Source: Macrostomum lignano (lineage: Eukaryota). From it: a DNA stretch of 64,000 nucleotides. Where the stretch lies: positions 1 through 64,000 of the forward strand of contig NIVC01002020.1 in NCBI GenBank assembly GCA_002269645.1, in the 5' to 3' direction. The position numbers and the translations under genes are program-made. Shown here in pieces: positions 6,516 to 60,678 of this stretch; the stretch's first letter is position 1, and every line of letters starts with the position of its first letter. The notes under the pieces are model-generated. The model saw nothing but the letters and a program-made list of their open reading frames with translations, had not been told where the DNA came from and ran no database searches.

Positions 6516-11006
<4,491 letters not shown>

Positions 11007-13270: not shown

Positions 13271-13348
13271 GGGCCGTAGCCCAGTGGTCCAGCACGGCGC
13301 TCTGATGTACCAGCGGCCCAGGCTCGATTCCAAGGGCAGTCACATTAA
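13271..13348 (+). mobile_element. tRNA-derived SINE, 5' head, cut off by the Helitron array
   Basis: A-box-like tagcccagtgg and B-box-like ggctcgattcc. Near-identical to the head of the intact copy at 44885-44959 (minus strand). Confidence 0.8.
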
Positions 13349-13832
13349 TCCTATATCCTAAAAATGAGTTGTCTGTATGTATGTATGTATATGGGTATGC
13401 GATTGATTTCAGAAAAAACGGCTCAACCGATTTTCTTCAAACTTGCACCATTCGATCAGAAATTTTTCTGGGACGGTACATGCATCTTAGCTAAGAAATT
13501 GCTAAATGTGAAAGGGATTAAATATTCGAAAAACATGCTTTTTTGCAAAGGTCAAGCAAAATTTCGACTTGAAATGCATTGTAAGAATGCTAGAGAAAAA
13601 ACTGACTGGCTGAATTTCAATTCTGATAAAGATTGCATCGCAACAAATTGAAAACAGTGTCGAAGAAATGCACACACGACTTGATTTAAATTGCGTAACC
13701 ATATTGCCAACTTAAATTGAGACTGATTCTGGCTGACTGAGAAATTGATTATGTCATAACTTTTTACTCCAATTGACTTGATGTAAGAATTGAATTATAA
13801 GGGCCACAATTCATGTGCTCCAATTGAAAAAA

Positions 13833-13897
13833 GATAGCCTAGATGCGAACAGACTGTACTGCTAATGTAGCAATCTGGGTTCGAATCTAAGTAGCGC
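13833..13897 (+). other. tRNA-like (Pol III box A/B) remnant inside Helitron unit 1
   Basis: gatagcctagatgcg...gtactgctaatg...ggttcgaatc; second copy at 40072-40136. No intact acceptor stem seen. Confidence 0.5.
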
Positions 13898-13959
13898 AAA
13901 ATGATTTTTTATTAAAACAACTTAAAAACAAAAAACTGCTAAACATAAAAGAAGCGCAA

Positions 13960-14436
13960 TGTCAAACATAAAAGAGCCACCATGTCAAAAATAAAAGAGC
14001 CACCATATCGAACATAAAAGAGTTACCATGTAAAACATTAAAGAGCCACCATGTTAAACATAAAACAGACACCATTAACAACATTAAAGAGCCAACCATT
14101 TCGAACATTAAAGAGCCACCATGTCGACCATTAAAAGAGCCACCATGTCGAACATACAAGAGCCACCATGTCAAACATAGAAGAGCCACCATGTCAAACA
14201 TTAAAGAGCCACCATGTCAAACATTAAAGATATACAATTTCAAATGTAAAGGTATAAAGCGCCATGCCAATTTAAAGGAGCCACTATAAAGCTAAGGAAA
14301 TTGTTGCACTAGCTACTTATTGTCTGGTGGATGCTTGCTATTTGGGGATGCTTGCTATCTGGGGGATGCTTGCTATCTGGGGGATGCTTGCTATTTGGGG
14401 ATGCTTGCTATCTGGGGGATGCTTGCTATCTGGGGA
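13960..14436. repeat. Short 23-bp (agagccaccatgtcaaacattaa) and 18-bp (gggggatgcttgctatct) arrays near the 5' end of unit 1
   Basis: Same repeats and same order as the 3' subterminal region of units 1, 3 and 4. Confidence 0.9.
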
Positions 14437-15053
14437 ATGAATGGGAATGCGCCCAGTAAAGTAGTATTTTTGTCGCCAGGCTAGAGAACTATAAATGTAG
14501 ACTGCGAGAAAAGATTGTACATTATAAAATCTCCCCGTGCACAATTGACAAACTAACTTTAAATGCTGGAGAGAGGGATAGTGAGAGAGTGAAATACATG
14601 CACATATATACAGTGTCTAATTGATTCACAATATACGAACCATGTTGAGACTGACCCTCCAAAATGTAATAAAACCGTCTGATTATAAAAAAGTCCAAAA
14701 GTGCCACAGAGAAAGATGTACATTGGCTACTGAGGCTTGCGCCTGCTTCAGAAAATTTATCTGAATCCTTTCACATAGGAGAGTTAGAGTTAGGTGTTTG
14801 AGATAGAGTATTGAATAATAAAAAAGTCCTGACCAATTAGCAGGCGGGTATTGGAGTGAATTTAGGCTTGCTGTACACACTGACAGTCTAACAGTGTACA
14901 AATGGTGTCCAGCTTTTTGGGATTGGGTTGTTGCTGAGTTTAAAACGCGTGACATTATAGACTTCATACCTTTCTCGTTTCTCGCACACAACCCCTACTA
15001 TCCTTTCTTTTCATTATCACTCAAAATTCTTATCTTTCAATTTGAATTCCAAT

Positions 15054-18000
15054 ATGGCTCGACGTGGCACCAGCGCATTGAAGAAGAGCAGAGATGCCAA
15101 GAAGAAGCGTCAGCAAGAGAGTGCCGTTCAGCGAGAGGAGCGGCTGGCTGGACTGCGGCAGCAGAAGAATGAGCGAACGGCCATGGAGACTGACGCGCAG
15201 CGAGAAGAGCGGCTGGCTGGACACCGGCAGCAGGAGGCTGAGCGAAGGGCAACGGAAACCGACGCTCAGCGAGAAGAGCGCCTGACGAGACTCCGGCAGG
15301 AAAATGCTGAGCGAAGGGCAATGGAAACCGACGCTCAGCGAGAAGAGCGCCTGACGAGACTCCGGCAGGAAAATGCTGAGCGAAGGGCAACTGAAACCGA
15401 CGCTCAGCGAGAAGAGCGCCTGACGAGACTCCGGCAGGAAAATGCTGAGCGAAGGGCAACGGAAACCGACGCTCAGCGAGAAGAGCGCCTGACGAGACTC
15501 CGGCAGGAAAATGCTGAGCGAAGGGCAACGGAAACAGACGCTCAGCGAGAAGAGCGTAGATCTGGAGACAGAACTCGTGCGGAGAAGCGACGCGCTTCAG
15601 AAACCGAAGAGCAACGAAGAGCTCGAGTGGAAGCCGAGCAAATTCGCCGTCGAGGAGTGTCGGCTGGCAGGTAGGATGACATTTTAATTGGAGCTATATA
15701 TTTTATAGCTATATAAAATCCAAGTGCCCATTGTGCCTAATTCTGGGTATTTTCTATCTTAGCTGATGTTTTATTGGTACTTGGGCATATAATTAAAAAC
15801 TGGAATCTGTTTCGTGCATTTTTCCTAATCTTTTCAGGTCGATTGCTTTCCAAGAATTTTTATTTAAGAGATCAGTATAGAATAGCATAAAATTTATTCG
15901 TCACTACTTTAATAACCGACAAATGAAGTTGTGTATAATTTTTTCCTATATTCCAGGTTTGATAGTAGTGAGTTGGCCACACCGTCTGTGGTACCTTTTG
16001 ATGCGTTGCGCATAATTCGCATTCCTGGTGATGGGAACTGTTTTTTTTATGCAGTCTGTGATCAGTTGCAGGGCACTCCACTTGAGACCGATGCGGCATC
16101 TTTAAGACACGAGCTGACGAGCCGTGTAGTGCAGATTATGCCAGAATTGATTGAACAAGGCTTTGTTTTGCCAGAAAATGCTGATTTCATTGTTGATTCA
16201 TCTTTTTCTGAAGGCACATATGTGCCTGATGAAGTTGTTCCGCTTTTAAGCCGTTGTTTTAATGTTGATCTGGTGATTTATCAAGAAAATGGCACTGTAT
16301 TGCAGTACTGTATGTCCCCTTTGCAGCCACCGATTGCAATCGTCCGAATTCTTTTGCGTCATGAGCATTATGAGTCATTGCGATTTGCTAATCCGATTCC
16401 AGTTTCTGAGCCCATTGTAGATGCAGAGGAGCCAAGATTAACTCAACAGGGTGCAGGTCATTTTGGCGCAAGACCTGCTCAAGAGAGGTAGGTCATTGGT
16501 GTGACTGGTCATCATAATTTATTTGTCATCGAACTCAAGTTGTTTTATTCTAATAATTTTTTTTGTAAACTGAAAGATTAACTGGGAAAACTGTTTGCCA
16601 TTAATCCTTTCTAATCCTAATCCTTCTAATCACAGGCCAGAACGGATAATCAGGCCTGAAGCGCCAGCCCATAACTGTGGCCCAATGGACAGAGCATGCG
16701 ACCAATGCGGTGCATTACTTTGGTGCTCTGAGACGAGGAATTTCTGCTGCGCCAAAGGCAAGGTAAAGCTGCCCAGCCGCACCGTGCCTCAAGTGCTGGC
16801 GGATCTGTACCTGGGGCGGCACAGACTGAGTGCCAAGTTCCTGACCAACATTCGGAGTTACAACTCGGCGCTGCACCTGACATCGCTGGGTGCCAAACTG
16901 CGGTTGGTGCCAGGCTGGTGTCCCAGCTTCATCATCAGCGGCCAGTTGCATCACAACACGGCGCCGCTGTTTGCAGAAGATTCAGCTGAGCCCCATGGCT
17001 GGCAAGTGTATTTCAATGATCGCGAACTTGAAAGCCGCCAGAGTCTCAGCCAGAAGGTGAAGCCGGAACTACTGGAGCTGTTGCAGACGCTGCTTCACGA
17101 ATGCAACGGCTATGTCCGCAGCCTGAGGGCAGTCGCTCATCGAATCAGTCAAGATCCGGAGTTGGGAGATGCGCGAATCGTGATTCACCCTGACCGTCGA
17201 CCATCTGGGGAACACATTCGGTATGTCTGCAAGACATTCTAATAAGATATTTTGCGTAATAAATTATCCAATTATCCAATTATCCAATTTGTACAAACTC
17301 AGTATCCCACAAACTCCGTTCAAAATAAGGCGCTACAACTTGCCTACGGCGAACGAGGTCGGTATCCTGATTGTGGAGGACAATGAGAACACACCGGCCA
17401 GTCGGGACGTGGTGATTCAACTGCGTGGAGGCGGTTCCCAGAGAATCAGCGAGACGCACCGCTCATATGACCCGCTGGAGTATGTGCTGCTGTTCCCGAA
17501 TGGCGAAGATGGCTGGCACCCGGAGTTGCTGATGAGTAATGGCAAGAAATTGACGCCCATGAAATACTATGCGAGCGAAATCATGGTGCGAGCGGGCCAG
17601 TTCAGTGTGCTGCACTATGGCCGAAGATTATTTCAGCAGTACTTGGTGGACATGTGTGCCAAGATTGAGGCAGAGAGGCTGCTGTATTTGCGGACCCATC
17701 AGCAGGACCTGCGCAGCGAGACGTACAGCGGTCTGCGGGACGCTCTGTTTGCAGCTGATGGCAGGTCTACCGACAGAGATCCGAGTGACATAGGCAAGCC
17801 CGCGCATGTGCTTCTGTCTTCGAGCTTCGTTGGCGGGCCAAGGTACCTGATGGAGAGGCTACAGGACGCTATGACCTATGTTCACAAGTTCGGTAAGCCG
17901 GACCTGTTTGTCACCGCAACGTGCAATCCGAAATGGCCGGAGATCAGCGCTCAGCTTCTGCCTGGACAGCGGGCAGAAGACCGGCCCGACATTGTTAGCC

Positions 18001-21000
18001 GAGTCTTTGAAATGAAGAAGAAAGCTCTGCTGGCCCAGTTGACCAAGCGCTATGGGAAAGAGGCCGCTCACGTTTGCTCACTGGAGTACCAGAAGCGTGG
18101 TGAGTAAAAATTCTGACTTGCAAGAATCAAAGTTTTAAGATTTATTAAAATTTAGATTTACAAAGGTTTTGTGATATTTTTTAATACTTTTTTGACGCTC
18201 CAGGTCTTCCTCATGTGCACTTTCTGCTGTGGCTCGTGAGCGGTCAGCGAGTGACTCCGGACCGATACGATGACATCGTGTCTGCCGAGATTCCGGACCC
18301 AGAGCAGCAGCCTGTGCTGTATGAGCTGGTGAAGACGCACATGATCCATGGCCCCTGCGGCAAGGAGAATCCGGCGTGTCCTTGCATGGAGAATGGCGAA
18401 TGCAGCAAGGGCTTTCCGAAAGAGTTCCAGCAGGTGACGCTGACCAGCGATACTGGCTACCCACTGTACCGCAGACTATCGCCTGAGATGGGCGGATTTA
18501 CAGTGGACAAACTGTTCAAAGGCCGGAGCATTCGCATGGACAACAGGGAAGTTCAAACGCTAATATATTGCTTAGTTGTGCATTGCTGCTTTTGTTTCTG
18601 AAAGTTAATGATATTATTTTTTCATTAAAACAGGTGGGTCGTTCCGTACAGCCCTGAACTGTTGCTCCACTTTGCGTGCCACTTGAACGTCGAAGTTTGC
18701 GCCACTGTGAAGTCGGTCAAGTACGTGATCAAGTACCTGTTAAAGGGTGGCGACATGGCGACGTTCAAAGTCGATGCCAATAGGAATTCTACTGAACCGA
18801 GAGAGCAGGCAGTGGGTAACCAGCAGCCGACGCAAACGACACGAAATGAGCCGCGGCGTGATGAGATTAAGGAGTACCTGTCCGCGCGCTACATTGGTCC
18901 AATGGAAGCCGTGAATACCATCTTGGGCTTTGAAGTAATTCGCATTCTAATTATTATTGGCTCATTTTAACCAGAGCTGTGAAACCTCATCATAGTATAA
19001 ATTGAATTTCCATCGAAACTTAAAGGCTGTATATTTTCCTTTCACTTTCTGATCAGGTGCACAACAGGTTTCCGGCGGTCATCCGACTCTGCGTTCACAA
19101 GTCGGAAGAGCAGCTCGTGTATTTCAACGAGGGGACCGCAAGAGCAAAAGCGAGAACGCCGAAGGATTCGACGTTGACGGCATTTTTCAAGCTGTGCCGT
19201 ATTGACGAATTTGCTGGGTCCTTGCTCTACACGGACGTGCCGTCCTACTTCGTGTGGCACTCCAGTGAAAGAGAGTGGCGGCGGGCCAAGCAGGGTGTGC
19301 GAGTCGATGGCCATCCGGGTGTAGTGCGGAACAAAAACGTTGCACGCATGTATACGGTGAGTCCAAGAGCAGGTGATTTATTTTACGTTCGAATGCTCCT
19401 TTTGAATGTTAGGGGACCGACTAGCTTCGAGGCGCTGCAGACCGTGGACGGCGTTGTGCATCCGAGCGCCAAGGCTGCTTGCATGGCCCTTGGCCTGCTG
19501 CAGCGAGATGATCACTGGCGGCGGTGTCTAGCTGAGGCCGTTCAGTCAAGAATGCCAAGAGCCCTGAGACATCTTCTGGCCGTAATTCTCATATGGGGTG
19601 AGCCTGAGGATGGCAGCGACCTCTGGTGCAGTTTTGCCGAGGATCTCAGCGAGGACCTGCGGTTCCACCACCGAGACTTGAGCACCGAGGAGATTACTGA
19701 CCTGGCGCTGCGTGAGCTTCAGAGCATGCTGATCTCCATGGGCGGGAGAAGCCTGCCAGAGTACGGCCTGCCTGCGGCCTCCGTGACACCTCAAGATGGA
19801 CCAATGCAGTTTGATACGGTTGAGCAAGCACTGATTACTGAGGCGCGCTTACCAATGCTGACAGATGAGCAGAAAGCGGTGTACGAGTCCGTGACTCAGA
19901 ATCTTGTGGACGGCACCAGCGGCTTGCACTTCCTGGACGCACCTGCTGGCACTGGCAAGACCTTCCTGCTGGAGGTTCTGCTAGCCTTCGTGCGCAGCCG
20001 GGGTGAAGTCGCTCTCGCCGTTGCGGCTTCTGGAATCGCAGCGACTCTTTTGCCAGGTGGACAGACGGCGCATTCAACGTGAGTAATTTATTGTCAATAT
20101 TTCAAAAAGCAGTTGTAAATATTTCGTGTGCTGTAAATATGTTCGGCATGGTGAAACTATTTGTCTATGCCAGGTTCAAGATACCAATTCGGGCGATCCG
20201 TTCGAGCAAAGACGTGTGCGCTGTTGGAGCGCAGTCCAAACAGGCCGCTTTATTTCGGACAGTGCGTCTAATTGTCTGGGACGAGATTTCTATGACAAAC
20301 CGGAAGGATTTGGAGGCCGTCGACCGGTGCTTGCGAGACGTGCGGAAGCAGGACGTGCCATTCGGCGGAGTGGTTTTCGTTTGCGCTGGGGACTTTCGCC
20401 AGCTGCTGCCCGTTGTGGTGCATGGGACTCGAGCCAACAGCGTCATGGCGTGTGTCAGCAGATCCCCACTGTGGAAATTTTTCCGGCGGCATCGCCTTAC
20501 AAGAAACATCCGATTGCTGAGCAGTTCCGATTCTGCAACGTATTTGAGATACACCGAGCTACTCAAGCAGGTAAGTTTGTTTTCATCAGTTTATTTATTG
20601 GAAGATTTAAGGATGTTCGGTTTCTTTCGTGTTGAGAGCTCCATTTTAAAAAGTGTGGCTTATTCAAGAATGCCTTGCTTAAAGTCTGTCTAGCGTTTTA
20701 AATATTTGACTTTTAACTCCCCCAGATCGGATCCGGAACAATTGAGCAGGATGCAGAGGAGAAAGTGTCTCTTCCTGCTGAGATCATTATTTCTGCGGAG
20801 GCGCCGCTCAATGATCTGATAAATTTTGTGTACCCATCGTTTGAGGCCTCAGTGGAGAGGGACGGCTACTTTGCAAGCCGAGCGATCCTGGCGCCGTACA
20901 ATGACTCAGTGGATGCCATCAACGAGACGTGCCTGGGCATGTTCCCCGGCAGCCTGCGGGAGTACCGCTCAATAGACAGTGTGGCCGATGAGGATGCCGC

Positions 21001-21490
21001 TACGCACTTCCCGCCTGAGTTGCTCAACCAGCTGGATGCCCCGAACTTTCCGATTCACTTGCTGAGGCTAAAAGTGGGTATGCCAGTAGTTCTTCTCAGG
21101 AACATCAACCCGCCACGATTGTGCAATGGTACGCGGCTGATCATACTCGCAATGGGCGAGAACGTGCTTAGATGCAAGATTGCCGCCGGCCAGTTCACGG
21201 GAGACGAGATTCTTCTGCCGCGAATCCCGCTGATTCCTAGCAATGCGGACCTCCCCGTCAGTTTTAAGCGGCTGCAGTTCCCTGTGAAGCCGAGTTTCTG
21301 CCTGACGATTCACAAGTCGCAGGGACAGTCTCTGGACACAGTTGGCATTGACCTGTCAGTCGGTTGCTTCACGCATGGCCAGCTGTACACGGCGCTGTCA
21401 CGAGCAAAGAACGCGGCAAATGTTCGCGTCCGGATTCCGGGAACAAGGACCAGAAACGTTGTGTTTCCAGAAGTTCTCACTGAAGAGTAA
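15054..21490 (+). CDS. Helitron RepHel protein (STPR-like 23-aa repeats, OTU protease, Zn finger, HUH Rep, PIF1 helicase); exons 15054-15670, 15957-16487, 16636-17220, 17330-18099, 18204-18546, 18634-18934, 19057-20078, 20174-20570, 20726-21490; about 1776 aa
   Basis: Rep motifs PDLFVTATCNP, EYQKRGLPHVH, DNRWVVPY and KYVIKYLLKG. PIF1 motifs DAPAGTGKT, IVWDEISM, GDFRQLLPV, TIHKSQGQSL and FTHGQLYTALSR. OTU GDGNC...HY; Zn finger CDQC...CC. All junctions are phase-consistent, but intron 5 needs a GG donor (18547). Confidence 0.9.
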
Positions 21491-22629
21491 TTTATTTATC
21501 GTAAAAAATGAGGGGTGAGCAATAATTTTCCTTATTATTGCAAAAGGCTAGAAAGTATATTCATTTATTTTTAAGGAAAAATAGAATAATTATTTCCCAT
21601 ATCTCTTAAGTAATAGCTCTCATTCTCTAAAATAATAGCTGTCAATAGCTCTCATTCCTAAAAGAATCGCAGGAAATTTATTGCCCCAACCTCATTTCTA
21701 ACGAAGCGTAGATATTGCGTGGCAGTGAGTACGAGCTAATAGCTGATGAACTTTATGTTGAAGCTCAATTAGGCTTATTTTATTCATTGTATAAATTTTT
21801 ACAGTCAATTTGCACTTTACAGTTAATTTGTATTTTAAGGCAATTTCATATTAGCCGAAAGTAACTTTTGAAACAAACCTTCTTTTGCACTGCTTTTAAT
21901 GAATTCAATCTTTGATGAGCAGTTAATTTTGTCTTTTATTTTTCCCCTGAAATTTCATTATAATTTGTGTAAAAACTTTACTTATTTTATATCGCAAATT
22001 TATGCAAAAGACGAAACAATTTTGTTTTTAGTTTTCCAAGGTTCGCAAAAACTTAACATTAGAGTGAATTTTAGTATATGGATTTTTACGCAAACTACGA
22101 GTGACAGTCTTTTTTCAAAAATCTAAAATATCTCAAGTCACCTGTAACAACTGTGGACTGTAAGCTCATAAAAAACGATTTGCATCAACTTGCGACGGGG
22201 CCTTCGTCTTCCATATATTGAAAGTTGAATAATATACGAAACTCACAAGATGTCAATTTTAACTAAGACGAAGGCCCTGAATGAAGCTTTTGTCTTACTT
22301 CATTTCTTAATCTTTGGCGAAACAAATATGAATAGTCTGTGGCAAAGCGCAAAGGCTAAGGAAATAGAGCCAAACTGATTGTTCTGACTATGGATTTGAG
22401 GGCAGGAATGAGCGAATCCGAGGGCTGCGACTATAGACTAACGTAGAGTATTAAAGGAACTCATCTGGTCACATGCAGCCATTGCACACGCTATGTATAC
22501 GTGACATATCGGTTGTACTTTTAATGCCATGTTCATAAGTTTCACTTTGTACTTTTCAAGTTTATTCGCAAAAAAATACAAAAAATTCTTGCGTTACAAA
22601 CGTCAAAAACGTTTAACAAACGTTAAAAA

Positions 22630-23765
22630 TTAAAGAGCCACCATGTCTAACATTAAAGAGCCACCATGCCAAACATCAAAGAGCCACCATGCCAAACATT
22701 AAAGAGCCACCATGTCAAACATAAAAGGACCAACATGTCAAACATTAAAGAGCCACAATGTCAAGCATAAAAGGACCACCATGTCGAACATTAAAGAGCC
22801 ACCATGTCAAAAATTAAAGAGCCACCATGTCAAGCATAAAAGGACCACCATGTCGAGCATTAAAGAGCCACCATGTCTAACATTAAAGAGCCACCATGTC
22901 GAACATTAAAGAGCTACCATTTCAATCATTAAAGAGCCATCATCACATTGAGGTGCCACCAGGTCAAACATTAAAGAGCCACCATGTCAAAAATAAAAAA
23001 GCCACCATGTAGAACATTAAAGAGCCATTATGTCAAACCTAAAAGAGCCACCATGTCAAACATTAAAGAGCCACCATGTCTAACATTAAAGAGCCACCAT
23101 GTCGAACATTAAAGAGCCACCATGTCGAAGATTATAGAGCCACCATGTCGAACATTAAAGAGCCACCATTTCAATCATTAAAGAGCCATCATCACATTGA
23201 GGTGCCACCAGGTCAAACATTAAAGAGCCACCATGTCAAACATAAAAGAGCCACCATGTCCAACATATATGTGACTCCATGTCAAACATTAAAGAGCCAC
23301 CATGTCAAACATTAAAGAGCCACCATGTCAAACATTAAAGAGCCACCATGTCGAACATTAAAGAGCCACCATGTCAAACATTAAAGAGCCACCATGTCGA
23401 ACATTAAAGAGCCATTATGTCAAACCTAAAAGAGCCACCATGTCAAACATTAAAGAGCCACCATGTCGAACATTAAAGAGCCATCATGTCAAACACTAAA
23501 AAGCCACCATGTCAAACATAAAAGATACACAATTTCAAACGTAAAAGTAAGCGTCATGCCAATTTTAAAGGAGCCACTATAGAGCTAAGGAAATTGTTGC
23601 ACTAGCTACTTATTGTCTGGTGGATGCTTACTATTTGGGGATGCTTGCTATCTGGGGGATGCTTGCTATCTGGGGGATGCTTGCTATCTGGGGGATGCTT
23701 GCTATTTGGGGGATGCTTGCTATCTGGGGGATGCTTGCTATCTGGGGGATGCTTGCTGTCTTGGG
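22630..23765. repeat. Helitron 3' subterminal 23-bp array followed by 18-bp array
   Basis: Directly visible tandem repeats. Confidence 0.93.
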
Positions 23766-23876
23766 ATGATTTCTTTTTGCATTACACTTTATTTGAGCAG
23801 TTTGTCTGTTGTCTTTGTCAAGGCTTTATTTGGCTGTCTTTTTGTTACTTGTAGAGAACAGAGATTCTATACAGAT

Positions 23877-23905
23877 GCCCCCCAACGGGGGGCGAAGATT
23901 GCTAG
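23877..23905 (+). other. Helitron 3' termination signal: GC hairpin plus CTAG
   Basis: gcccccc aac ggggggc, then 8 nt, then CTAG. The same signal, with one stem substitution, ends units 3 (39602) and 4 (43251). Confidence 0.9.
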
Positions 23906-26245: not shown

Positions 26246-26479
26246 GACTTGAAAGACTAATAAAGATGCAATTAACGTGAGTAATGCTTGAGTGCATTTT
26301 TGTCTGCCAGTAGCGCATCTGAGTTCGATAGCCATCACAAGTAGTTTAACCTGATATGTATAATACGGCCCGATGAGACGTATCAGGTAAATCTTGCTTT
26401 ATTCACCTAATAAATTAAAATTAGATGGGATCATAATGGAATTGGGATCAGTGATTAGCTAAGCAAAATGATTAGCTAA

Positions 26480-27720: not shown

Positions 27721-27953
27721 ATCGGATACAATCGGATCCCAATTTAGTTGTGCCATGAAAGTTAATAAGTAATAGTGAAATTAATGTAGGTAAATATTAG
27801 GTGAATATATAGCAGGTTGGCTGCATATCAATGGGCCTTGAGATTGTGGTTGAAATAACGTGTTCGCTGCTTTTTCACGATTCAGAGGTTCTTCCACTCT
27901 AAAACTGAGGGTATGCAGCCATGAGAGAGAGGTTTGAAGCAGCTTCAGCAAAC

Positions 27954-29506: not shown

Positions 29507-29538
29507 TGCTCCCCGAAGGGGGGCAAAACTTTAGCTAG
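29507..29538 (+). other. Alternative Helitron 3' termination signal of unit 2
   Basis: tgctcccc gaa ggggggca hairpin, then CTAG at 29535-29538 joined directly to the TC of unit 3. Confidence 0.85.
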
Positions 29539-33800: not shown

Positions 33801-36800
33801 GATATTTTTTAATACTTTTTTGACGCTCCAGGTCTTCCCATGTGCACTTTCTGCTGTGGCTCATGAGCGGTCAGCGAGTGACTCCGGACCGATACGATGA
33901 CATCGTGTCTGCCGAGATTCCGGACCCAGAGCAGCAGCCTGTGCTGTATGAGTTGGTGAAGACGCACATGATCCATGGCCCCTGCGGCAAGGAGAATCCG
34001 GCGTGTCCTTGCATGGAGAATGGCGAATGCAGCAAGGGCTTTCCGAAAGAGTTCCAGCAGGTGACGCTGACCAGCGATACTGGCTACCCACTGTACCGCA
34101 GACTATCGCCTGAGATGGGCGGATTTACAGTGGACAAACTGTTCAAAGGCCGGAGCATTCGCATGGACAACAGGGAAGTTCAAACGCTAATATATTGCTT
34201 AGTTGTGCATTGCAGCTTTTGTTTCTGAAAGTTAATGATATTATTTTTTCATTAAAACAGGTGGGTCGTTCCGTACAGCCCTGACCTGTTGCTCCAGTTT
34301 GCGTGCCACTTGAACGTCGAAGTTTGCGCCACTGTGAAGTCGGTCAAGTACGTGATCAAGTACCTGTTAAAGGGTGGCGACATGGCGACGTTCAAAGTCG
34401 ATGCCAATAGGAATTCTACTGAACCGAGAGAGCAGGCAGTGGGTGACCAGCAGCCGACGCAAACGACAGGAAATAAGCCGCGTGATGAGATTAAAGAGTA
34501 CCTGTCCGCGCGCTACATTGGTCCAATGGAAGCCGTGAATACCATCTTGGGCTTTGAAGTAATTCGCATTCTAATTATTATTGGCTCATTTTAACCAGAG
34601 CTGTGAAACCTCGTCATAGTATAAATTGAATTTCCATCGAAACTTAAAGGCTGTATATTTTCCTTCCACTTTCTGATCAGGTGCACAACAGGTTTCCGGC
34701 GGTCATCCGACTCTGCGTTCACAAGTCGGAAGAGCAGCTCGTGTATTTCAACGAGGGGACCGCAAGAGCAAAAGCGAGAACGCCGAAGGATTCGACGTTG
34801 ACGGCATTTTTCAAGCTGTGCCGTATTGACGAATTTGCTGGGTCCTTGCTCTACACGGAGGTGCCGTCCTACTTTGTGTGGCTCTCCAGCGAAAGAGAGT
34901 GGCGGCGGGCCAAGCAGGGTGTGCGAGTCGATGGCCATCCGGGTGTAGTGCGGAACAAAAACGTTGCACGCATGTATACGGTGAGTCCAAGAGCAGGTGA
35001 TCTATTTTACGTTCGAATGCTCCTTTTGAATGTTAGGGGACCGACTAGCTTCGAGGCGCTGCAGACCGTGGACGGCGTTGTGCATCCGAGCGCCAAGGCT
35101 GCTTGCATGGCCCTTGGCCTGCTGCAGCGAGATGATCACTGGCGGCGGTGTCTAGCTGAGGCCGTTCAGTCAAGAATGCCAAGAGCCCTGAGACATCTTC
35201 TGGCCGTAATTCTCATATGGGGTGAGCCTGAGGATGGCAGCGACCTCTGGTGCAGTTTTGCCGAGGATCTCAGCGAGGACCTGCGGTTCCACCACCGAGA
35301 CTTGAGCACCGAGGAGATTACTGACCTGGCGCTGCGTGAGCTTCAGAGCATGCTGATCTCCATGGGCGGGAGAAGCCTGCCAGAGTACGGCCTGCCTGCG
35401 GCCTCCGTGACACCTCAAGATGGACCAATGCAGTTTGATACGGTTGAGCAAGCACTGATTACTGAGGCGCGCTTACCAATGCTGACAGATGAGCAGAAAG
35501 CGGTGTACGAGTCCGTGACTCGGAATCTTGTGGACGGCACCAGCGGCTTGCACTTCCTGGACGCACCTGCTGGCACTGGCAAGACCTTCCTGCTAGAGGT
35601 TCTGCTAGCCTTCGTGCGCAGCCGGGGTGAAGTCGCCCTCGCCGTTGCGGCTTCTGGAATCGCAGCGACTCTTTTGCCAGGTGGACAGACGGCGCATTCA
35701 ACGTGAGTAATTTATTGTCAATATTTCAAAAAGCAGTTGTAAATATTTCGTGTGCTGTAAATATGTTAGGCATGGTGAAACTATTTTCTATGCCAGGTTC
35801 AAGATACCAATTCGGGCGATCCGTTCGAGCAAAGACGTGTGCGCTGTTGGAGCGCAGTCCAAACAGGCCGCTGTATTTCGGACAGTGCGTCTAATTGTCT
35901 GGGACGAGATTTCTATGACAAACCGGAAGGATTTGGAGGCCGTCGACCGGTGCTTGCGAGACGTGCGGAAGCAGGACGTGCCATTCGGCGGAGTGGTTTT
36001 CGTTTGCGCTGGGGACTTTCGCCAGCTGCTGCCCGTTGTGGTGCATGGGACTCGAGCCAACAGCGTCATGGCGTGTGTCAGCAGATCCCCACTGTGGAAA
36101 TTTTTCCGGCGGCATCGCCTTACAAGAAACATCCGATTGCTGAGCAGTTCCGATTCTGCAACGTATTTGAGATACACCGAGCTACTCAAGCAGGTAAGTT
36201 TGTTTTCATCAGTTTATTTATTGGAAGATTTAAGGATATTCGGTTTCTTTCGTGTTGAGAGCTCCATTTTAAAAATTGTGGCTTATTCAAGAATGCCTTG
36301 CTTAAAGTCTGTCTAGCGTTTTAAATATTTGACTTTTAACTCCCCCAGATCGGATCCGGAACAATTGACCAGGATGCAGAGGAGAAAGTGTCTCTTCCTG
36401 CTGAGATCATCATTTCTGCGGAGGCGCCGCTCAATGATCTGATAAATTTTGTGTACCCATCGTTTGAGGCGTCAGTGGAGAGGGACGGCTACTTTGCAAG
36501 CCGAGCGATCCTGGCGCCGTACAATGACTCAGTGGATGCCATCAACGAGACGTGCCTGGGCATGTTCCCCGGCAGCCTGCGGGAGTACCGCTCAATAGAC
36601 AGTGTGGCCGATGAGGATGCCGCTACGCACTTCCCGCCTGAGTTGCTCAACCAGCTGGATGCCCCGAACTTTCCGATTCACTTGCTGAGGCTAAAAGTGG
36701 GTATGCCAGTAGTTCTTCTCAGGAACATCAACCCGCCACGATTGTGCAATGGTACGCGGCTCATCATACTCGCAATGGGCGAGAACGTGCTTAGATGCAA

Positions 36801-37113
36801 GATTGCCGCCGGCCAGTTCACGGGAGACGAGATTCTTCTGCCGCGAATCCCGCTGATTCCTAGCAATGCGGACCTCCCCGTCAGTTTTAAGCGGCTGCAG
36901 TTCCCTGTGAAGCCGAGTTTCTGCCTGACGATTCACAAGTCGCAGGGACAGTCTCTGGACACAGTTGGCATTGACCTGTCAGTCGGTTGCTTCACGCATG
37001 GCCAGCTGTACACGGCGCTGTCACGAGCAAAGAACGCGGCAAATGTTCGCGTCCGGATTCCGGGAACAAGGACCAGAAACGTTGTGTTTCCAGAAGTTCT
37101 CACTGAAGACTAA
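30820..37113 (+). pseudogene. Second RepHel copy with a 1-bp deletion in the HUH motif; exons 30820-31298, 31585-32115, 32264-32848, 32958-33727, 33832-34173, 34261-34558, 34681-35702, 35797-36193, 36349-37113
   Basis: Exon 5 reads gtcttcccatgtgcac against gtcttcctcatgtgcac in unit 1, which breaks GLPHVH. Otherwise colinear with scattered substitutions. A sequencing error cannot be excluded. Confidence 0.8.
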
Positions 37114-38269
37114 TTTATTTATCGTAAAAAATGAGGGGTGAGCAATAATTTTCCTTATGCAAAAGGCTAGAAAGTATATTCATTTATTTTTAAGGAAAAA
37201 TAGAATAATTATTTCCCCATATCTCTTAAGTAATAGCTCTCATTCTCTAAAGCAATAGCTGTCAATAGCTCTCATTCCTAAAAGAATCGCAGGAAACTTA
37301 TTGCCCCAACCTCATTTCTAACGAAGCGTAGATATTGCATGGCAGTGAGTACGAGCTAATAGCTGATGAACTTTATGTTGAAGCTCAATTAGGCTTATTT
37401 TATTCATTGTATTAATTTTTACAGTCAATTTGCACTTTACAGTTAATTTGTATTTTAAGGCAATTTCATATTAGCCGAAAGTAACTTTTGAAACAAACCT
37501 TCTTTTGCACTGCTTTTAATGAATTCAATCTTTGATGAGCAGTTAATTTTGTCTTTTATTTTTCACCTGAAATTTCATTATAATTCGTGTAAAAACTTTA
37601 CTTATTTTATATCGCAAATTTATGCAAAAGACGAAACAATTTTGTTTTTAGTTTTCCAAGGTTCGCAAAAACTTAACATTAGAGTGAATTTTAGTATATG
37701 GATTTTTACGCAAACTACGAGTGACAGTCCTTTTTTCAAAAATCAAAAATATCTCGATCAAGTCACCTGTGACAACTGTGGACTGTAAGCTCATAAAAAA
37801 CGATTTGCATCAACTTGCGACGGGGCCTTCGTCTTCCATATATTGAAAGTTGAATAATATACGAAACTCGCAAGATGTCAATTTTAACTAAGGCGAAGGC
37901 CCTGAATGAAGCTTTTGTCTTACTTCATTTCTTAATCTTTGGCGAAACAAATATGAATAGTCTGTGGCAAAGCGCAAAGGCTAAGGAAATAGAGCCGAAC
38001 TGATTGTTCTGACTATGGATTTGAGGGCAGGAATGAGCGAATCCGAGGGCTGCGACTATAGACTAACGTAGAGTATTAAAGGAACTCATCTGGTCACATG
38101 CAGCCATTGCACACGCTATGTATACGTGACATATCGGTTGTACTTTTAATGCCATGTTCATAAGTTTTAACTTTGTACTTTTCAAGTTTATTCGCGAAAA
38201 AATACAAAAAATTCTTGCGTTACAAACGTCAAAAACGTTTAACAAAACGTTTAACAAACGTTAAAAATT

Positions 38270-39460
38270 AAAGAGCCACCATGTCTAACATTAAAGAGCC
38301 ACCATGTCAAACATTAAAGAGCCACCATGCCAAACATTAAAGAGCCACCATGTCAAACATAATAGGACCAACATGTCAAACATTAAAGAGCCACAATGTC
38401 AAGCATAAAAGGACCACCATATCGAACATTAAAGAGCCACCATGTCGAAGATTATAGAGCCACCATGTCGAACATTAAAGAGCCACCATTTCAAACATTA
38501 AAGAGCCATCATTACATTGAGGTGCCACCAGGTCAAACATTAAAGAGCCACCATGTCAATCATAAAAGAGCCACCATGTCCAACATATATGTGACTCCAT
38601 GTCAAACATTAAATAGCCACCATGTCAAAAATTAAAGAGCCACCATGTCTAACATTAAAGAGCCACCATGTCGAACATTAAAGAGCCACCATGCCAAACA
38701 TTAAAAAAGAGCCACCATGTCAAAAATAAAAAAGCCACCATGTAGAACATTAAAGAGCCATTATGTCAAACATAAAAGAGCCACCATGTCAAACATTAAA
38801 GAGCCACCATGTCAAACATAAAAGGACCAACATGTCAAACATTTAAGAGCCACCATGTGAAGCATAAAAGGACCACCATGTCGAGCATTAAAGAGCCACC
38901 ATGTCGAAGATTATAGAGCCACCATGTCGAACATTAAAGAGCCACCATTTCAAACATTAAAGAGCCATCATTACATTGAGGTGCCACCAGGTCAAACATT
39001 AAAGAGCCACCATGTCAATCATAAAAGAGCCACCATGTCCAACATATATGTGACTCCATGTCAAACATTAAATAGCCACCATGTCAAAAATTAAAGAGCC
39101 ACCATGTCTAACATTAAAGAGCCACCATGTCGAACATTAAAGAGCCACCATGTCAAACATTAAAGAGCCACCATGTCGAACATTAAAGAGCCATCATGTC
39201 AAACACTAAAGAGCCACTATGTCAAACATAAAAGAGCCACCATGTCAAACATAAAAGATACACAATTTCAAACGTAAAAGTAAGCGTCATGCCAATTTTA
39301 AAGGAGCCACTATAGAGCTATGGAAATTGTGGCACTAGCTACTTATTGTCTGGTGGATGCTTACTATTTGGGGATGCTTGCTATCTGGGGGATGCTTGCT
39401 ATCTGGGGGATGCTTGCTATTTGGGGGATGCTTGCTATCTGGGGGATGCTTGCTGTCTTG
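38270..39460. repeat. Unit 3 3' subterminal 23-bp and 18-bp arrays
   Basis: Directly visible. Confidence 0.93.
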
Positions 39461-40071
39461 GGATGATTTCTTTTTGCATTACACTTTATTTGAGCAGTTT
39501 GTCTGTTGTCTTTGTGAAGGCTTTATTTGGCTGTCTTTTTGTTACTTGTAGAGAACAGAGATTCTATCCAGATGTCCCCCAACGGGGGGCGAAGATTGCT
39601 AGTCCTATATACTAAAAATGAGTTGTCTGTGGGTATGCGATAGATTTCAGAAAAAATGGCTCAACCGATTTTCTTCAAACTTGCACCATTCGATCAGAAA
39701 TTTTCCTGGGACGGTACATGCATCTTGGCTAAGAAATTGCTCAATGTTAAAGGGATTAAATATTCGAAAAACATGCTTTTTTGCAAAGGTCAAGCAGCTC
39801 TTTCGACCTGAAATGCGTTGTAAGAATGCTAGAGAAAAAACTGACTGACTGAATTCCAATTGTGATAAGGATTGCATCACAACCAGTTGAAAACAGTGCC
39901 GAAGAAATGCACACAAAACTTGATTTAAATTGCGTAACCATATTGCTAACTTAAATTGACACTGATAATAGCTGACTGGGAAATTGATTATGTCATAACT
40001 TTTAACTCTAACCGATTTGCAATAAGAATTTAATTATAAGGGCCACAATTCATGATCTCCAATTGAAAAGA

Positions 40072-40136
40072 GATAGCATAGATGCGAAAAGACTGGACTG
40101 CTAATGCAGCGACCTGGGTTCGAATCTTAGTAGTGC
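40072..40136 (+). other. tRNA-like (Pol III box A/B) remnant inside unit 4
   Basis: gatagcatagatgcg..ctggactgctaatgcag..ggttcgaatc; the loop resembles a GCT anticodon arm. Confidence 0.5.
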
Positions 40137-40194
40137 AAAAAGATTTTTTTATTCAAAAACCTTAAAAACACAAAATGCTAAACACAAAAAAGCA

Positions 40195-42895
40195 CAATGT
40201 CAAACATTAAAGAGCCACCATGTCCAACATATATGTGACTTCATGTCAAACATTAAAGAGCCATCATGTCAAACATAAAAGAGCCACCATGTCAAACATA
40301 AAAGAGCCACCATGTCAAACATAAAAGAGCCACCATGTCAAACATAAAAGAGCCACCATGTCAAACATAAAAGAGCCATCATGTCAAACATTAAAGAGCC
40401 ACCATGTCAAACATTAAAGAGCCACCATGTCTAACATTTAAGAGCCACCATGTCTAACATTTAAGAGCCACCATGTCAAATATTAAAGAGCCACCATGTC
40501 AAACATTAAAGAGCCACCATGTCAAACATTAAAGAGCCACCATGTCAAACATTAAAGAGCCACCATGTAGAACATTAAAGAGCCATCATGTCAAACATAA
40601 AAGAGCCACCATGTCAAATATTAAAGAGCCACCATGTCAAAAATTAAAGAGCGACCATGTCTAACATTAAAGAGCCACCATGTCAAACATTAAAGAGCCA
40701 TCATTACGTTAAGCTGCCACCAGGTCAAACATTAACGAGTCACCATGTCAAGTATATTCGTGACTCCATGTCAAACATAAAAGAGCCACCATGAAGAACA
40801 TAATAGAGCCACCATGTCAAACATTAAAGAGCCACCATGTCAAACATAAAAGAGCCACTATGTCACACATAAAAGAGCCACCATGTCAAACATATATGTG
40901 AATCTATGTCAAACAGTAAAGAGCCACCATGTCGAACATTAAAGAGCCACCATGTCGAACATTAAAGAAACACCATGTCCAACATATATGTGATTCCATG
41001 TCAAACATTAAAGAGCCACCATGTCAAACATAAAAGGACTACCATGTCGAACATTAAAGAGGCACCATGTCAAACATTAAAAAGCCACCACGTCTAACAT
41101 TATAGAGCCACCATGTCAAACATTAAAGAGCAACCATGTCAAACATAAAAGAGCCACCATTTTGAACATTAAAGAGCCACCATGTCAAACATTAAAGAGC
41201 CACCATTTCGAACATTAAAGAGCCACCATGTCATCATAAAAGAGCCACCATGTCGAACATAAAAGAGCCACCATGTCGAACATAAAAGAGCCACCATGTC
41301 GAACATAAAAGAACCACAATGTCGAACATAAAAGAGCCACAATGTCAAACATTAAAGAGCCACCATGTCGAACATTAAAGAACCACCATGTCTAACATTA
41401 AAGAGCCACCATGTCGAACATTAAAGAGCCACCATGTCGAACATTAAAGAGCCACCATGTCGAACATTAAAGAAACACCATGTCCAACATATATGTGATT
41501 CCATGTCAAACATTAAAGAGCCACCATGTCCAACATAAAAGGACCACCATGTCGAACATTAAAAAGCCACCATGTCTAACATTATAGAGCCACCATGTCG
41601 AACATTAAAGAGCAACCATGTCAAACATAAAGAGCCACGATTTTGAACATTAAAGAGCCACCATGTCGAATAATAAAGAGCCACCATGTCAAACATTAAA
41701 GAGCCACCATTTCGAACATTAAAGAGACACCATGTCAAACATTTAAGAGCCACCATGTCGAACATAAAAGACCCACCATGTCAAACATAAAAGATCCACC
41801 ATGTCAAACATTTAGAGGCACCATGCAGAGCATAAAAGAAGCACCATGTAAAACATTTTTGTGACTTTATGTCAAACAATAAAGAGCCACCATGTCGAAC
41901 ATTAAAGAGCAACCATGTCAAACATAAAAGAGCCACTATTTCGAACATTAAAGAGCCACCATGTCAAACAATAAAGAGCCACCATGTCAAACATTCAAGA
42001 GCCACCATGTCAAACATATATGTGACTTTATGTCAAACATTAAAGAGCCACCATTTCGAACATTAAAGAGCCACCATGTCGAACATAAAAGAGCCACCAT
42101 GTCGATCATAAAAGAGCCAGCATGTAAAACATTAAAGAGCCACATTGTCAAACATTAAAGAGCCATTATGTCTAACATTAAAGAGCCACCATGTGAAACA
42201 TTAAAAAGCCACCATGTCAAATATTTAAGAGCCACTATGTCGAACATAAAAGAGCCACCATGTCGATCATAAAAGAGCCACCATGTAAAACATTAAAGAG
42301 CCACATTGTCAAACATTAAAGAGCCATTATGTCAAACATTAAAGAGCCACCATGTCTAACATTAAAGAGCCACCATGTGAAACATTAAAAAGCCACCATG
42401 TCAAATATTTAAGAGCCACCATGTCAAACATAAAAGAGCCACTATTTCGAACATTAAAGAGCCACCATGTCAAACAATAAAGAGCCACCATGTCAAACAT
42501 AGAAGCGCCACCATGTCGAACATTCAAGAGCCACCATGTCAAACATATATGTGACTTTATGTCAAACATTAAAGAGCCACCATTTCGAACATTAAAGAGC
42601 CACCATGTCGAACATACAAGAGCCACCATGTCAAACATTAAAGAGCTACCATGTCAAACATAAAAGAGCCACCATTTCGAACATTAAAGAGCCACTATTT
42701 CGAACATTAAAGAACCACCATTTCGAACATTAAAGAGCCACCATGTCAAACATAAAAGAGCCATCATGTCAGACATTGAAAAGCCACCGTATTAAACATA
42801 AAAGAGTTACCATGTAGAACATAAAAAAGCCACCATGTCATCATAAAAGAGCCACCATGTCAAACATAAAAGAGCCACCATGTCAAACATAAAAG
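40195..42895. repeat. Expanded 23-bp minisatellite (agagccaccatgtcaaacattaa), about 2.7 kb
   Basis: Directly visible. Confidence 0.95.
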
Positions 42896-43251
42896 ATACA
42901 CAGTTTCAAACGTAAAAGTAAGCGAATTTTAAAGGAGTCACTATAATGCTAAGGAAATTGTCGCACTAGCTACTTATTGTCTGGTGGATGCTTGCTATCT
43001 GGAGGATGCTTGCTATCTAGGGGATGCTTGCTATCTGGGGATGCTTGCTATTTTGGGGATGCTTGCTATCTGGGGGATGCTTGCTATTTGGGGGATGCTT
43101 GCTGTCTTGGGATGATTTCTTTTTGCATTGCACTTCATTTGAGTATTTTGTCTGTTTTCTTCGTGAAGGCTTTATTTGGCTATCTTTCTGTTACTTGTAG
43201 AGAACAGAGATTCTATACAGATGTCCCCCAACGGGGGGCGAAGATTGCTAG

Positions 43252-43525
43252 TTTGAGACTAAATTGGAATCTCGGCTTGGCTCTGCTCGTGCAATTAACG
43301 CCATTGAGGGCCCTCAACCCTCAAGACACAGTGAAGTGTACATGCCTAACGATAAATAAAGTTAGGGCCGCTGTACACTCCTGTGTGAGTGTGTGCCAAT
43401 GCGTATGACTGCGTACGTATCCGCGCGCTTGTGTGCCTGCTCAGGGGAGTCGGCGGAATGGGCAGCAATGCCCCTCGCCGGTTGTGCGATAATGTCGCTT
43501 AAAGTGCGCCAGGGACACAGCCCTG
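43252..43525 (+). mobile_element. SINE body, continuation of the SINE interrupted at 13348
   Basis: tttgagactaaattggaatctcggcttggctctgctcgtgc... matches the reverse complement of 44605-44883. Confidence 0.85.
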
Positions 43526-43815
43526 CCTGTAAGAATGATGTGTTGCAAATCACGAGAGTCGAATTTAATTTGATTAATTTAAAGTTTTTACCGAAATGTG
43601 AGAACTATTTCTGCCATGGGATTTCTATTTGGTTCACACTGTACGGCTAAAGTGTAAACCCGGTCTAGTTTTTAACTAACAAAAAAACAAATCGCTACGA
43701 GTATCTTTCATACAGCGGTACACTTGGATGATTTTAACATGACAGGACGTAGTAAACTTCCTAACGATAAGAATGCGCTTTTATAGATATGTTGTTCGAA
43801 GGTTGGAAATAACTT

Positions 43816-45345
43816 TCATTGCTTTCGCGGTCCTTCCTCCGGCGTCTTCCAGATTAAGAACACCCGAGAGTCGAACTTGAAGAAGATGCACATCTCCGGC
43901 TCGTGACTGTAGCTGGCGTAGTACTTGCCCTGCACTATCATGATGTGCCACATCGGGCCGAACTCGCGGTCAAGACGCTGCTTCACGTTCAAAGCGATGT
44001 CGCGCTCGTCGTTGAAGTTCGAGCAGGCGTTGCGGACGATTTGCACGACCTGGTACTGGGTCCACTCGCTCATGTGGACCAGGATGATTCGGACGTCGCT
44101 TGGCAGGCCGGAGCGGATGAGGCTCTGGCGTCGGTAGTTGCGTCTGAAAACCCGATTTTGCATTTGATCTATTTTAACTTTTGAATGCCACGGTCTAGCG
44201 GGATTAAACAGTTCAGCTTACGCGCTTTTCGTCTGCAGGCCGAGGACTTCGCAGAACTCGTCAAAGCTGATGACTCCGTCTCCGTCTAGGTCGAACATGG
44301 TGAGCCATTTCTGTGCGGAAATTTGAGTTGTTGCAGTGAATCGTCTGTCTGTAGCTTTTTATCGCTTGGTATCTTAGTGTCCGTCTGTAATATGGCACCC
44401 TGGCGCAATGCCCTCAGCGACATCGTCCCGCCATCAGCACTGACTGAAGCGCGCCAATACTGCACGCAGGCAAAGCACTCATACACAGCTCACCCAGGGT
44501 GTACAGCGGCCCTGACTTTCTAATCGTCAGGCATGTACACTCTCTGTGCCTTGGGGGTTGGCCCTCATGGCTGTGAATGACATGACAATTTTTTTTATTA
44601 GAGGCCGGGGGCTGTGTGCACTCTGGCGCACTTCAAGCGACATTGTCGCACAACCGGCGAGAGGCATTGCTGCCCATTCCGCCGACTCCCCTGAGCAGGC
44701 ACACAAGCGCGCGGATACGTACGCAGTCATACGCACAGGCGCACACTCACACAGGAGTGTACAGCGGCCCTAGCTTTATTTATCGTTAGGCATGTACACT
44801 TCACTGTGCCTTGGGGGGTTGGCTCTCAATGGCGTTAATTGCACGAGCAGAGCCAAGCCGAGATTCCAATTTAGTCTCAAATTAATGTGACTGCACTTGG
44901 AATCGAGCCTGGGCCGCTGGCACACCAGAGCAGCTGTGCTACCGCTGGGCTACGCCCCCCCTTTATGGCATGACAATCCCCTCGGGCCAATTTTATTTTA
45001 CGTGCACACCAGCCCCCCAATGAATGTGGGGCCGCGCACGGAATGGCTGTCTGTCTTAGAGCTCTGGCCTCTCCTTCTTAGTTTCTAAATTCCCATCTGG
45101 AGCAGCCCAGCCCGGTTAGTCGCCAACCGAACCTTGACAAAGGACTCCTGAAAGTTGTTCTTCTTCATGTAGGCCCTCAGCTCATCAACCGTGATGGTCT
45201 CGCTGCCGTCCTCGTCAATGGCAATGAAGGCGTTCAGGAACGGATTGTCGGCGATGTCGCTTTTCTCTTCGGCAGGCGGTGCCCTTGTCTGGTGCGTGGC
45301 CCTATAAGTCTGGGCCAGGTTTGTCGGCTTGCTGCTTGCCTGCAT
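43816..45345 (-). CDS. Tegumental allergen-like (TAL) protein: EF-hand pair plus dynein light chain-like domain; exons 45345-45133, 44310-44222, 44143-43816; 209 aa
   Basis: FLNAFIAIDEDGSETITVDEL (EF1), KWLTMFDLDGDGVISFDEFCEVLGL (EF2) and MSEWTQY..VKQRLDREFGPMWH..GKYYASYSHEP..FKF..LIWKTP (DLC). Same architecture and motifs as Schistosoma Sm22.6/TAL1. GT-AG junctions are phase-consistent. Confidence 0.88.
44605..44959 (-). mobile_element. Intact tRNA-derived SINE in TAL intron 1, with a diverged partial repeat of its body at about 44380-44575
   Basis: Reverse complement reads ggggcgtagcccagcggtagc...ggctcgattccaagtgcagtcacattaatttgagactaaattgg..., i.e. head and body contiguous. Confidence 0.85.

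Positions 45346-60073: not shown

Positions 60074-60678
<605 letters not shown>

Follow-up and report, generated by a model that had tools for sequence, protein, structure and literature searches.

A heterogeneous four-unit Helitron array in the flatworm Macrostomum lignano, probably built by consecutive insertions at a single A/T site

Results

The array and its insertion site

The stretch of DNA analysed here, hereafter the window, comprises the first 64,000 nucleotides (nt) of contig NIVC01002020.1 of the Macrostomum lignano assembly GCA_002269645.1 and contains, in an intergenic space onto which two genes converge with their 3' ends (a Kelch-repeat gene on the plus strand and an EF-hand/dynein-light-chain gene on the minus strand), an array of four Helitrons, U1, U2, U3 and U4, all in plus orientation (Table 1). 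The array interrupts a repeat that resembles a short interspersed nuclear element (SINE) and occupies 29,903 bp (13349-43251) between a single A and a single T of that repeat. With the slash marking the point of joining, the left junction reads ...ccaagggcagtcacattaa(13348)/TCCTATATCCTAAAAATGAG, or in short form ...cagtcacattaa(13348)/TCCTATATCC(13349), and the right junction reads ...cccccaacggggggcgaagattgCTAG(43251)/tttgagactaaattgg(43252), the insert ending in gattgCTAG. As in any Helitron, the boundary slides by 1 nt because a T begins both the insert and the right flank. No target-site duplication (TSD) was found around the insert when the filled site was compared with an empty site on another contig and with a paralogous copy of the repeat, both described below. 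A preliminary description of this window had placed a four-unit array without TSD at precisely these limits, and they are exact.

The three internal junctions all read CTAG/TCCTATATAC, with no spacer between the units. All four units begin with TC (more fully, with TCCTATAT(A or C)C) and end in CTAG, a terminus of the CTRR type; about 290 bp of the 5' end are common to U1-U4, and about 130 bp of the 3' end, including the hairpin, are common to U1, U3 and U4. In these three units the hairpin, CCCCC(C)AACGGGGG(G), is set back 12-13 nt from the 3' terminus, and U2 has a hairpin of its own, CTCCCCGAAGGGGGG, 14 nt before its 3' end. The stems appear in the minimum-free-energy folds, with a significant z-score for U1 alone (-3.0), as expected for stems this short. 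With TC and CTRR termini, a 3' hairpin, insertion between A and T without TSD, and a RepHel protein in the autonomous members, the array units are canonical Helitrons (Helitron1 type); the rule A/TC...CTRR/T that the preliminary description had invoked thus holds, in the form A/TC...CTAG/T, and is joined by the hairpin and by Helitron proteins. Helentrons, or Helitron2 elements, are defined by asymmetric terminal inverted repeats, a T/T target and an APE endonuclease. Membership in that group was considered and rejected, given that the TC...CTAG ends and the A/T target do not fit it; no endonuclease domain was found by Pfam in the ten open reading frame (ORF) segments scanned, and terminal inverted repeats had no separate search.

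Three states of one locus

When 149 bp of left flank and 448 bp of right flank were joined and compared with the window by blastn, a single high-scoring segment pair of 354 bp (92.1%, E=2e-143), far above anything that chance would give, ran across the join onto 44958..44609 of the minus strand, where an uninterrupted copy of the repeat reads ...cagtcacattaa/tttgagactaaattgg. The flanks do therefore rebuild an uninterrupted copy at the junction, as had been proposed. The further claim that this copy, 1.6 kb away, is the exact empty site stands only as regards the presence of an uninterrupted repeat there: the copy is a paralogue of a dispersed repeat of ~350 bp and not an allele. The true empty version of the array locus, orthologous or homeologous, lies on another contig, NIVC01000202.1 (L003), on which a collinear counterpart of window 12322-13349 (97.9%) runs without a break into that of 43249-46084 (98.3%); its site reads ...cagtcacattaa/tttgggactaaattgg with nothing between the flanks. 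Since L003 is contiguous across the site, the flanks belong to one SINE-like copy, and the objection that they might derive from two independent copies is ruled out. The distance between the flanking genes is 2.6 kb in L003 versus 32.8 kb in the window.

A third contig, NIVC01002384.1 (L004), has the locus in a different state, so that, where a search for empty alleles had been recommended at the outset, both an empty site and a partly filled one came to light. The left flank of L004 is identical to window 12322-13348 at 1027 of 1027 positions and passes, at ...cacattaa/TCCTATATACTAAAAATGAAATGCTTGG (beginning with TCCTATATACTAAAAATGAAATGC), straight into U2, the first base of its 5' end included; from there L004 matches window 23903-26637 at 99.96% (1 mismatch in 2,735 bp) and window 27040-31566 at 100% over 4,527 bp. 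The arrangement is thus host A/U2/U3, without U1, and, leaving U1 aside, the ~8.3 kb that could be compared near the site contain one mismatch. Further from the insertion site, over window 1-6748, identity between L004 and the window falls to 95.7%, and this divergence identifies L004 as a separate copy of the locus and not a re-assembly of the same molecule; L005, in contrast, is NIVC01002020.1 itself, 100% identical to window 1-21006. The assembly accordingly holds three states of the locus: empty (L003), U2-U3 without U1 (L004) and U1-U2-U3-U4 (the window).

Table 1. Positions of the array, its component modules and the surrounding features in the window
Feature	Position	Strand	Remarks
Kelch-repeat, Rab9-effector-like gene	6516..11006	+	P0145, 398 aa
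(GTCT)n	6777-7153		
18-bp repeat	7784-8540		
(TTAG)n	10027-10651 and 60074-60678		93% alike
21-bp repeat	11094-12321		
SINE-like repeat, left part	13271..13348	+	78 bp; putative tRNA-like A-box/B-box head; final base is the target A
U1	13349..23905	+	10,557 bp; composite Helitron; absent from L004
U1, 23-bp satellite of 5' module	13941-14230		followed by 18-bp repeats to 14439
U1, RepHel core	14449-22624		
U1, RepHel gene	15054..21490	+	short introns; STPR-like repeats, OTU-like, HUH Rep, PIF1 helicase
U1, 69-bp tandem repeat	15128-15556		6.2 copies
U1, OTU-like segment	15916-16488		
U1, satellite of 3' part	22625-23547		
U1, 18-bp repeats of 3' part	23616-23765		then hairpin and CTAG
U2	23906..29538	+	5,633 bp; RPA-only
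U2, RPA-like gene	24837..26242	+	two exons; REPA_OB_2 (OB fold) 5.1e-10
U3	29539..39602	+	10,064 bp; RepHel Helitron
U3, 69-bp tandem repeat	30896-31184		4.2 copies
U3, OTU-like segment	31550-32119		
U3, satellite	38263-39280		
U4	39603..43251	+	3,649 bp; non-autonomous Helitron
U4, 23-bp satellite	40193-42896		2.7 kb
U4, 18-bp repeats	42980-43111		then hairpin and CTAG
SINE-like repeat, right part	43252..43523	+	first base is the target T
EF-hand + dynein-light-chain-type gene	~43816-45345	-	209-aa model in L003; predicted splice model
SINE-like repeat, partial copy	44447-44571		in predicted first intron of the EF-hand/dynein-light-chain gene
SINE-like repeat, uninterrupted paralogue	44609..44958	-	in the same predicted intron
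22-bp repeat	46085-46907		
19/38-bp repeat	47012-47569		
42-bp repeat	48090-48616		
22-bp repeat	49121-50135		
20-bp repeat	50398-50960		
31-bp array	51347-55986		4.6 kb
50-bp repeat	56618-57638		
23-bp repeat	58277-59378		
Rhodopsin-type receptor-like ORF	61164-62642		492 aa, uninterrupted

The RepHel elements U1 and U3

U1 and U3 share a core of ~7-8 kb in which the ORF segments are split by short GT-AG introns; three of the exon joins were confirmed against the annotated M. lignano protein P0005, to which the Rep-domain ORF of the window is 100% identical. Pfam recognizes Helitron_like_N (4.5e-46), PIF1 (2.5e-34 and 1.2e-19), Pif1_2B (1.6e-16) and UvrD_C_2, and the motifs LPHVHFLLW (HUH) and GTGKT are present. 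The 69-bp tandem repeat that differs in copy number between the two units is coding and specifies, at the N-terminal end of the RepHel frame, 23-aa repeats of the STPR type (PF21107, 1.6e-20); we know of no report of this DNA-binding-type repeat on a Helitron transposase. Upstream of Rep lies a segment that resembles an OTU-like cysteine protease (GDGNCFFY), a weak match (E=0.0075) below the Pfam cut-off. No frameshift was seen in the U1 RepHel gene relative to the sister copies on two further contigs, L001 and L002, and U1, with its apparently intact RepHel, is potentially autonomous. U3 differs from U1, L001 and L002 by a 1-bp deletion at 33838 that shifts the frame right before the HUH motif; the change may be genuine and inactivating, or else an error of the long-read assembly.

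The core of U3 (31200-38251) is 98.89% identical to that of U1 (15572-22624), compared with 98.75% between U1 and L001, 99.10% between U3 and L001, and 99.96% between L001 and L002. The similarity between the cores of U1 and U3 thus does not exceed that to copies at other loci (98.75-99.12%), and so these two units are not local duplicates of each other.

The count of four units holds, with the refinement that U1 appears to be composite in itself. Its first 1.1 kb are of the U4 type, comprising the 5' end, the 23-bp satellite and the 18-bp repeats; this module breaks at 14440 and the RepHel core starts at 14449, at a point that corresponds to a position 673 bp inside U3. In L001 and L002, a complete U4-type element stands head to tail ahead of a complete autonomous element. 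To judge from its sequence, U1 therefore looks like a fused dimer, a U4-type 5' module joined to a 5'-truncated autonomous core, such as would result from a dimer of the L001/L002 type by deletion of ~550 bp over the junction. Given that L004 lacks the whole of U1, the simplest reading is that U1 came in as a single pre-fused unit.

U2, U4 and a second family

U2 has the 5' end common to the array but a 3' region of its own, ending in ctccccgaaggggggcaaaactttagCTAG, together with internal repeats of 44 bp and 31 bp. The only protein it encodes is RPA-like and near-identical to the 338-aa proteins P0143 and P0144. Elsewhere, longer elements have the U2 modules as their 3' half, and some of them carry a second RepHel 78-83% identical (L010, L011); the 5' 280 bp of U2 are 99.6-100% identical to longer elements on L007 and L008. 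From these resemblances U2 can be read as a derivative, by internal deletion, of a second family that carries RepHel and RPA elsewhere. This second RepHel lineage is found at L010 1-6672 and L011 1-6423, with 78-83% DNA identity to the U1/U3 core and the order RepHel, RPA-like gene, U2-type 3' end; L011 has an annotated RepHel of 1137 aa. An element of this kind is probably the autonomous parent of U2. The locus of P0003, a protein of another M. lignano Helitron lineage (Rep 61% identical), is a degenerate remnant with unrecognisable termini and is uninformative on arrays.

U4 is non-coding and consists of the 5' end, a satellite with the 23-bp unit AAACATTAAAGAGCCACCATGTC, 18-bp repeats and the 3' hairpin with CTAG.

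A separate observation concerns P0146 (UniRef A0A1I8JJZ7), an 880-aa protein in which the Kelch gene is fused with an upstream ORF (window 6118-6468) on one side and with the U2 RPA-like ORF on the other. It carries no NCBI source, so that another annotation is its probable origin, and the fusion looks like an artefact of annotation due to the Helitron, one more easily made from the U1-less arrangement of L004.

Helitron junctions at other loci

The survey covered 11 distinct loci, namely the window and 10 others. At these loci, 15 of the 18 3' ends of the two Helitron families are followed within 4 bp by another 5' end, and head-to-tail junctions occur on 9 contigs besides the window. The 3' end of family B, the U2 type, is 98.6-100% identical among loci and stands upstream of at least 5 different partners, and this combination of a near-identical end with varied partners requires many independent junction-forming events. 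Small as it is, the survey supports a strong bias to insertion at the junction.

Two further 5' ends are nested ~15-52 bp within a resident 5' end. Insertions from a few bp to 52 bp inside the resident 5' end, leaving short 5' stubs, were seen at L008 5099-5151, L002 4860-4876 and L007 14659-14664, and at one junction in this group an additional TCCT separates CTAG from the 5' end that follows. This pattern suggests that the whole 5' terminal region, beyond the exact junction, is an insertion hot spot. At L001 5227, the left-most element is preceded by G (...gatcgaag/TCC) and not by A, a non-canonical 5' flank.

The host repeat, the flanking genes and the surrounding repeats

The SINE-like repeat is present in at least 3 copies in the window and in 4 in L003, with further copies in L001 and L013. 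An A-box-like tagcccagtgg and a B-box-like ggctcgattcc were recognized by eye only; ARAGORN and Rfam found nothing in the window, so that the label of a tRNA-derived SINE has no formal support. The full and partial intronic copies of Table 1 are inverted relative to the interrupted copy, which lies downstream of the EF-hand/dynein-light-chain gene.

The stop codon of the latter gene is 564 bp from the right end of the array. On the other side, the Kelch-repeat ORF is 100% identical to BOX15_Mlig002422g1 (P0121), and P0145 falls in the same 90% cluster. Look-ups of exact products for three window ORFs (the dynein-light-chain exon, a G-protein-coupled receptor and the Kelch exon) gave no match, and no candidates came from searching for homologues of the 115-aa dynein-light-chain ORF. 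The uninterrupted 492-aa ORF near the right end of the window resembles a rhodopsin-type seven-transmembrane receptor and has no exact product on record. Both flanks (6777-12321 and 46085-60678) are dense in unrelated micro- and minisatellites, the lengths of which vary among the three copies of the locus.

Discussion

How the array formed

So what chain of events could have produced this arrangement? We consider it likely that the intergenic head-to-tail array was built by consecutive insertions at one A/T within the SINE-like repeat, the last event being the gain of U1 (10.6 kb), which entered where the host A met the 5' T of the element already in place. The order follows from the comparison of L004 with the window: host A/U2 in one and host A/U1/U2 in the other, on haplotypes that are otherwise alike, imply that U1 was gained last and on the 5' side. 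The preliminary description had held that a single site gathered four different members of the family; the three states of the locus bear this out in part, separate gain being seen for U1 only, and U2, U3 and U4 could have come one by one or as a composite.

The mechanism that we envisage is simple. The first Helitron to arrive would have split the SINE-like repeat, leaving the host A beside the 5' T of the resident and thereby re-creating an A/T target at the resident's own nick site. A later Helitron entering there would be joined to the resident by CTAG/TC without a spacer. RepHel might cleave the 5' junction of the resident, its natural substrate, and use it as the target of strand transfer, in which case arrays would extend at their 5' side. 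The resident junction between the host A and TC may thus be a favoured strand-transfer target.

Several considerations weigh against this reading. All comparisons of the locus are drawn from a single PacBio assembly, and among the copies of the locus therein we found no intermediate states for the arrival of U2, U3 or U4; the L004 contig stops within U3, and the locus is known there only up to that unit. The loci of the survey were reached via Helitron proteins, and some, L010 and L012 among them (99.8% over 13.3 kb), are probably allelic. In L001 and L002, the younger-looking autonomous copies, 99.96% identical, sit 3' of more diverse partners, an order that fits insertion at the 3' side (G/T) as well as at the 5' side. 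Finally, U1 and U2 begin with the common 8 nt TCCTATAT, which would make a microhomology-mediated precise deletion of U1 possible.

Could U2-U3-U4, or part of it, have arrived as one composite, the upstream 3' ends having been bypassed at a donor array, with U1 added later? Helitrons are known to bypass ends and to transpose as composites (PMC4224331), arrays are common in the M. lignano genome so that donors exist, U1 itself resembles a fused dimer that moved as a unit, and only the empty and the U2-U3-containing states are seen, with no single-unit state. The U2-U3 pair, however, is not repeated at any other sampled locus; in L010 and L012 the RepHel element that comes after the U2-type element differs in its 5' region, and the halves of the L001 and L002 dimers differ in divergence (91% vs 99.96%), which points to local assembly and not to copying en bloc. 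On this balance, we regard arrival as a composite as rather unlikely.

It appears distinctly improbable that the state of L004 is the derived one, with U1 present ancestrally and then removed, whether through precise excision or through recombination of its 5' end with that of U2. Apart from the shared first 8 nt, the two 5' ends are ~92% identical over 280 bp, and clean excision has been invoked for a maize series (Du et al., 2008; PMC2267711). Nevertheless, the 5' end in L004 is of the U2 type from base 9 on, so that any crossover would be confined to the first 8 nt; unequal crossover between the 5' ends as the source of L004 was rejected because the L004 end is of pure U2 type. Helitron transposition is mainly replicative, which is a further point against the loss of U1.

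There is very little room for the view that the order of the units is an assembly artefact, a chimera of dispersed copies joined via their common ends. The genome is extremely repeat-rich, 290-bp 5' ends and 98.9% identical 7-kb cores are shared, and the U3/U4 and U4/host junctions are present in one contig only; yet the host/U2 and U2/U3 junctions recur on L004, an independent contig that differs elsewhere in the flanks, both outer junctions fall at the same A/T of one repeat copy, as L003 demonstrates and as a chimera would hardly bring about, and head-to-tail junctions are seen on the 9 other contigs.

Origin from one element, by rolling-circle concatenation or local tandem duplication with later divergence, is the classical account of perfect CTAG/TC junctions, and one could cite for it such junctions without a host A between units and the 7-kb core common to U1 and U3. 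It has hardly any probability left here and was rejected: the units are heterogeneous in content (RepHel, RPA-only, satellite-only) and in length, the 3' end of U2 is distinct, U1 and U3 are not closest relatives, being no more alike than copies on other contigs, and U1 is missing from the array in L004, the haplotype of which is otherwise identical.

Comparison with known systems

Head-to-tail Helitron arrays are already known from maize and from bats, and growth by repeated insertion is known Helitron behaviour, of which the flatworm case is a very clean instance. In maize, Du et al. (2008; PMC2267711) described adjacent Helitrons joined CTAG/TC (a G/T junction), with allelic states that had none, one or both of the elements, and already put forward a model of A/T insertion beside a resident Helitron. 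The array described here has the same kind of junction between different Helitrons and likewise three allelic states. The maize intermediate, however, left the order of insertion ambiguous and required either G/T insertion or clean excision (PMC2267711), whereas the flatworm intermediate, L004, lacks the 5'-most unit, so that the canonical A/T model fits directly; moreover, four units (five ancestral pieces) are involved here, and in an animal. As reported in the same paper (PMC2267711), Pritham and Feschotte took perfect junctions without a host A as a sign of tandem replication. Head-to-tail junctions and arrays have been established for bats and for plants (PMC5876387), with the same perfect joining of the 3' end of one copy to the 5' end of the next, but those arrays have been read as rolling-circle concatemers of one element, unlike the present one, which is heterogeneous and to which one unit was added separately. 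Such arrays are established on Drosophila Y chromosomes too.

The satellite-bearing non-autonomous elements of the oyster, like DINE-type elements, are Helentrons, with terminal inverted repeats and a T/T target. U4, with its 2.7-kb 23-bp satellite, resembles them as a rolling-circle element that carries and disperses internal tandem repeats (PMC7492417) but, as noted, the flatworm elements have canonical Helitron ends. A parallel in composition is rice Mothra, which combines autonomous RepHel(+RPA) elements, RPA-only 'semi-autonomous' elements and non-autonomous elements with tandem repeats, all with common TC...CTAG termini and a 3' hairpin (PMC4683698). In rice these types are dispersed, whereas in the flatworm all three occur in one array, and host, sequences and satellites are unrelated. 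The circular intermediate of Helraiser has a CTAG-TC junction and inserts at A/T without TSD (Grabundzija et al., 2016, 2018; PMC5876387), as do the flatworm units, the joins of which are of the same form. Preference for the 5' junction of a resident is not a reported property of Helraiser; for the flatworm element it is a proposal made here. A partial search of the literature turned up no description of these M. lignano Helitron families, the most relevant paper naming Helitrons in other species only.

Implications

Signs of recent activity include the apparently intact RepHel of U1, the presence or absence of U1 on near-identical haplotypes, and copies that are up to 99.96% identical, so that these Helitron families look recently active. 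A broader hypothesis would combine three propositions for this flatworm: that 'homing' to the 5' nick site of a resident is the dominant mode of insertion of these families, that heterogeneous arrays are the normal state (compare the 15 of 18 sampled 3' ends that abut another 5' end, in at least 5 different partner combinations), and that the family is currently active. Taken jointly, these can be advanced only tentatively, somewhat short of what we would call probable.

One assembly with three states of one locus provides a clean natural record of the formation of a head-to-tail Helitron array, in which a 10.6-kb element entered precisely where the host A adjoined the resident's 5' T, an order that had been ambiguous in maize. 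The families involved, with RepHel, RPA-only and satellite-carrying partners, are new to the literature that was searched and help explain part of the repeat load of M. lignano and the dispersal of the 23-bp satellite. If true, a strong bias to junction insertion would bear on target choice by RepHel, and if these elements are both self-targeting and active, they would represent a natural active animal Helitron in a model organism ready for transgenesis.

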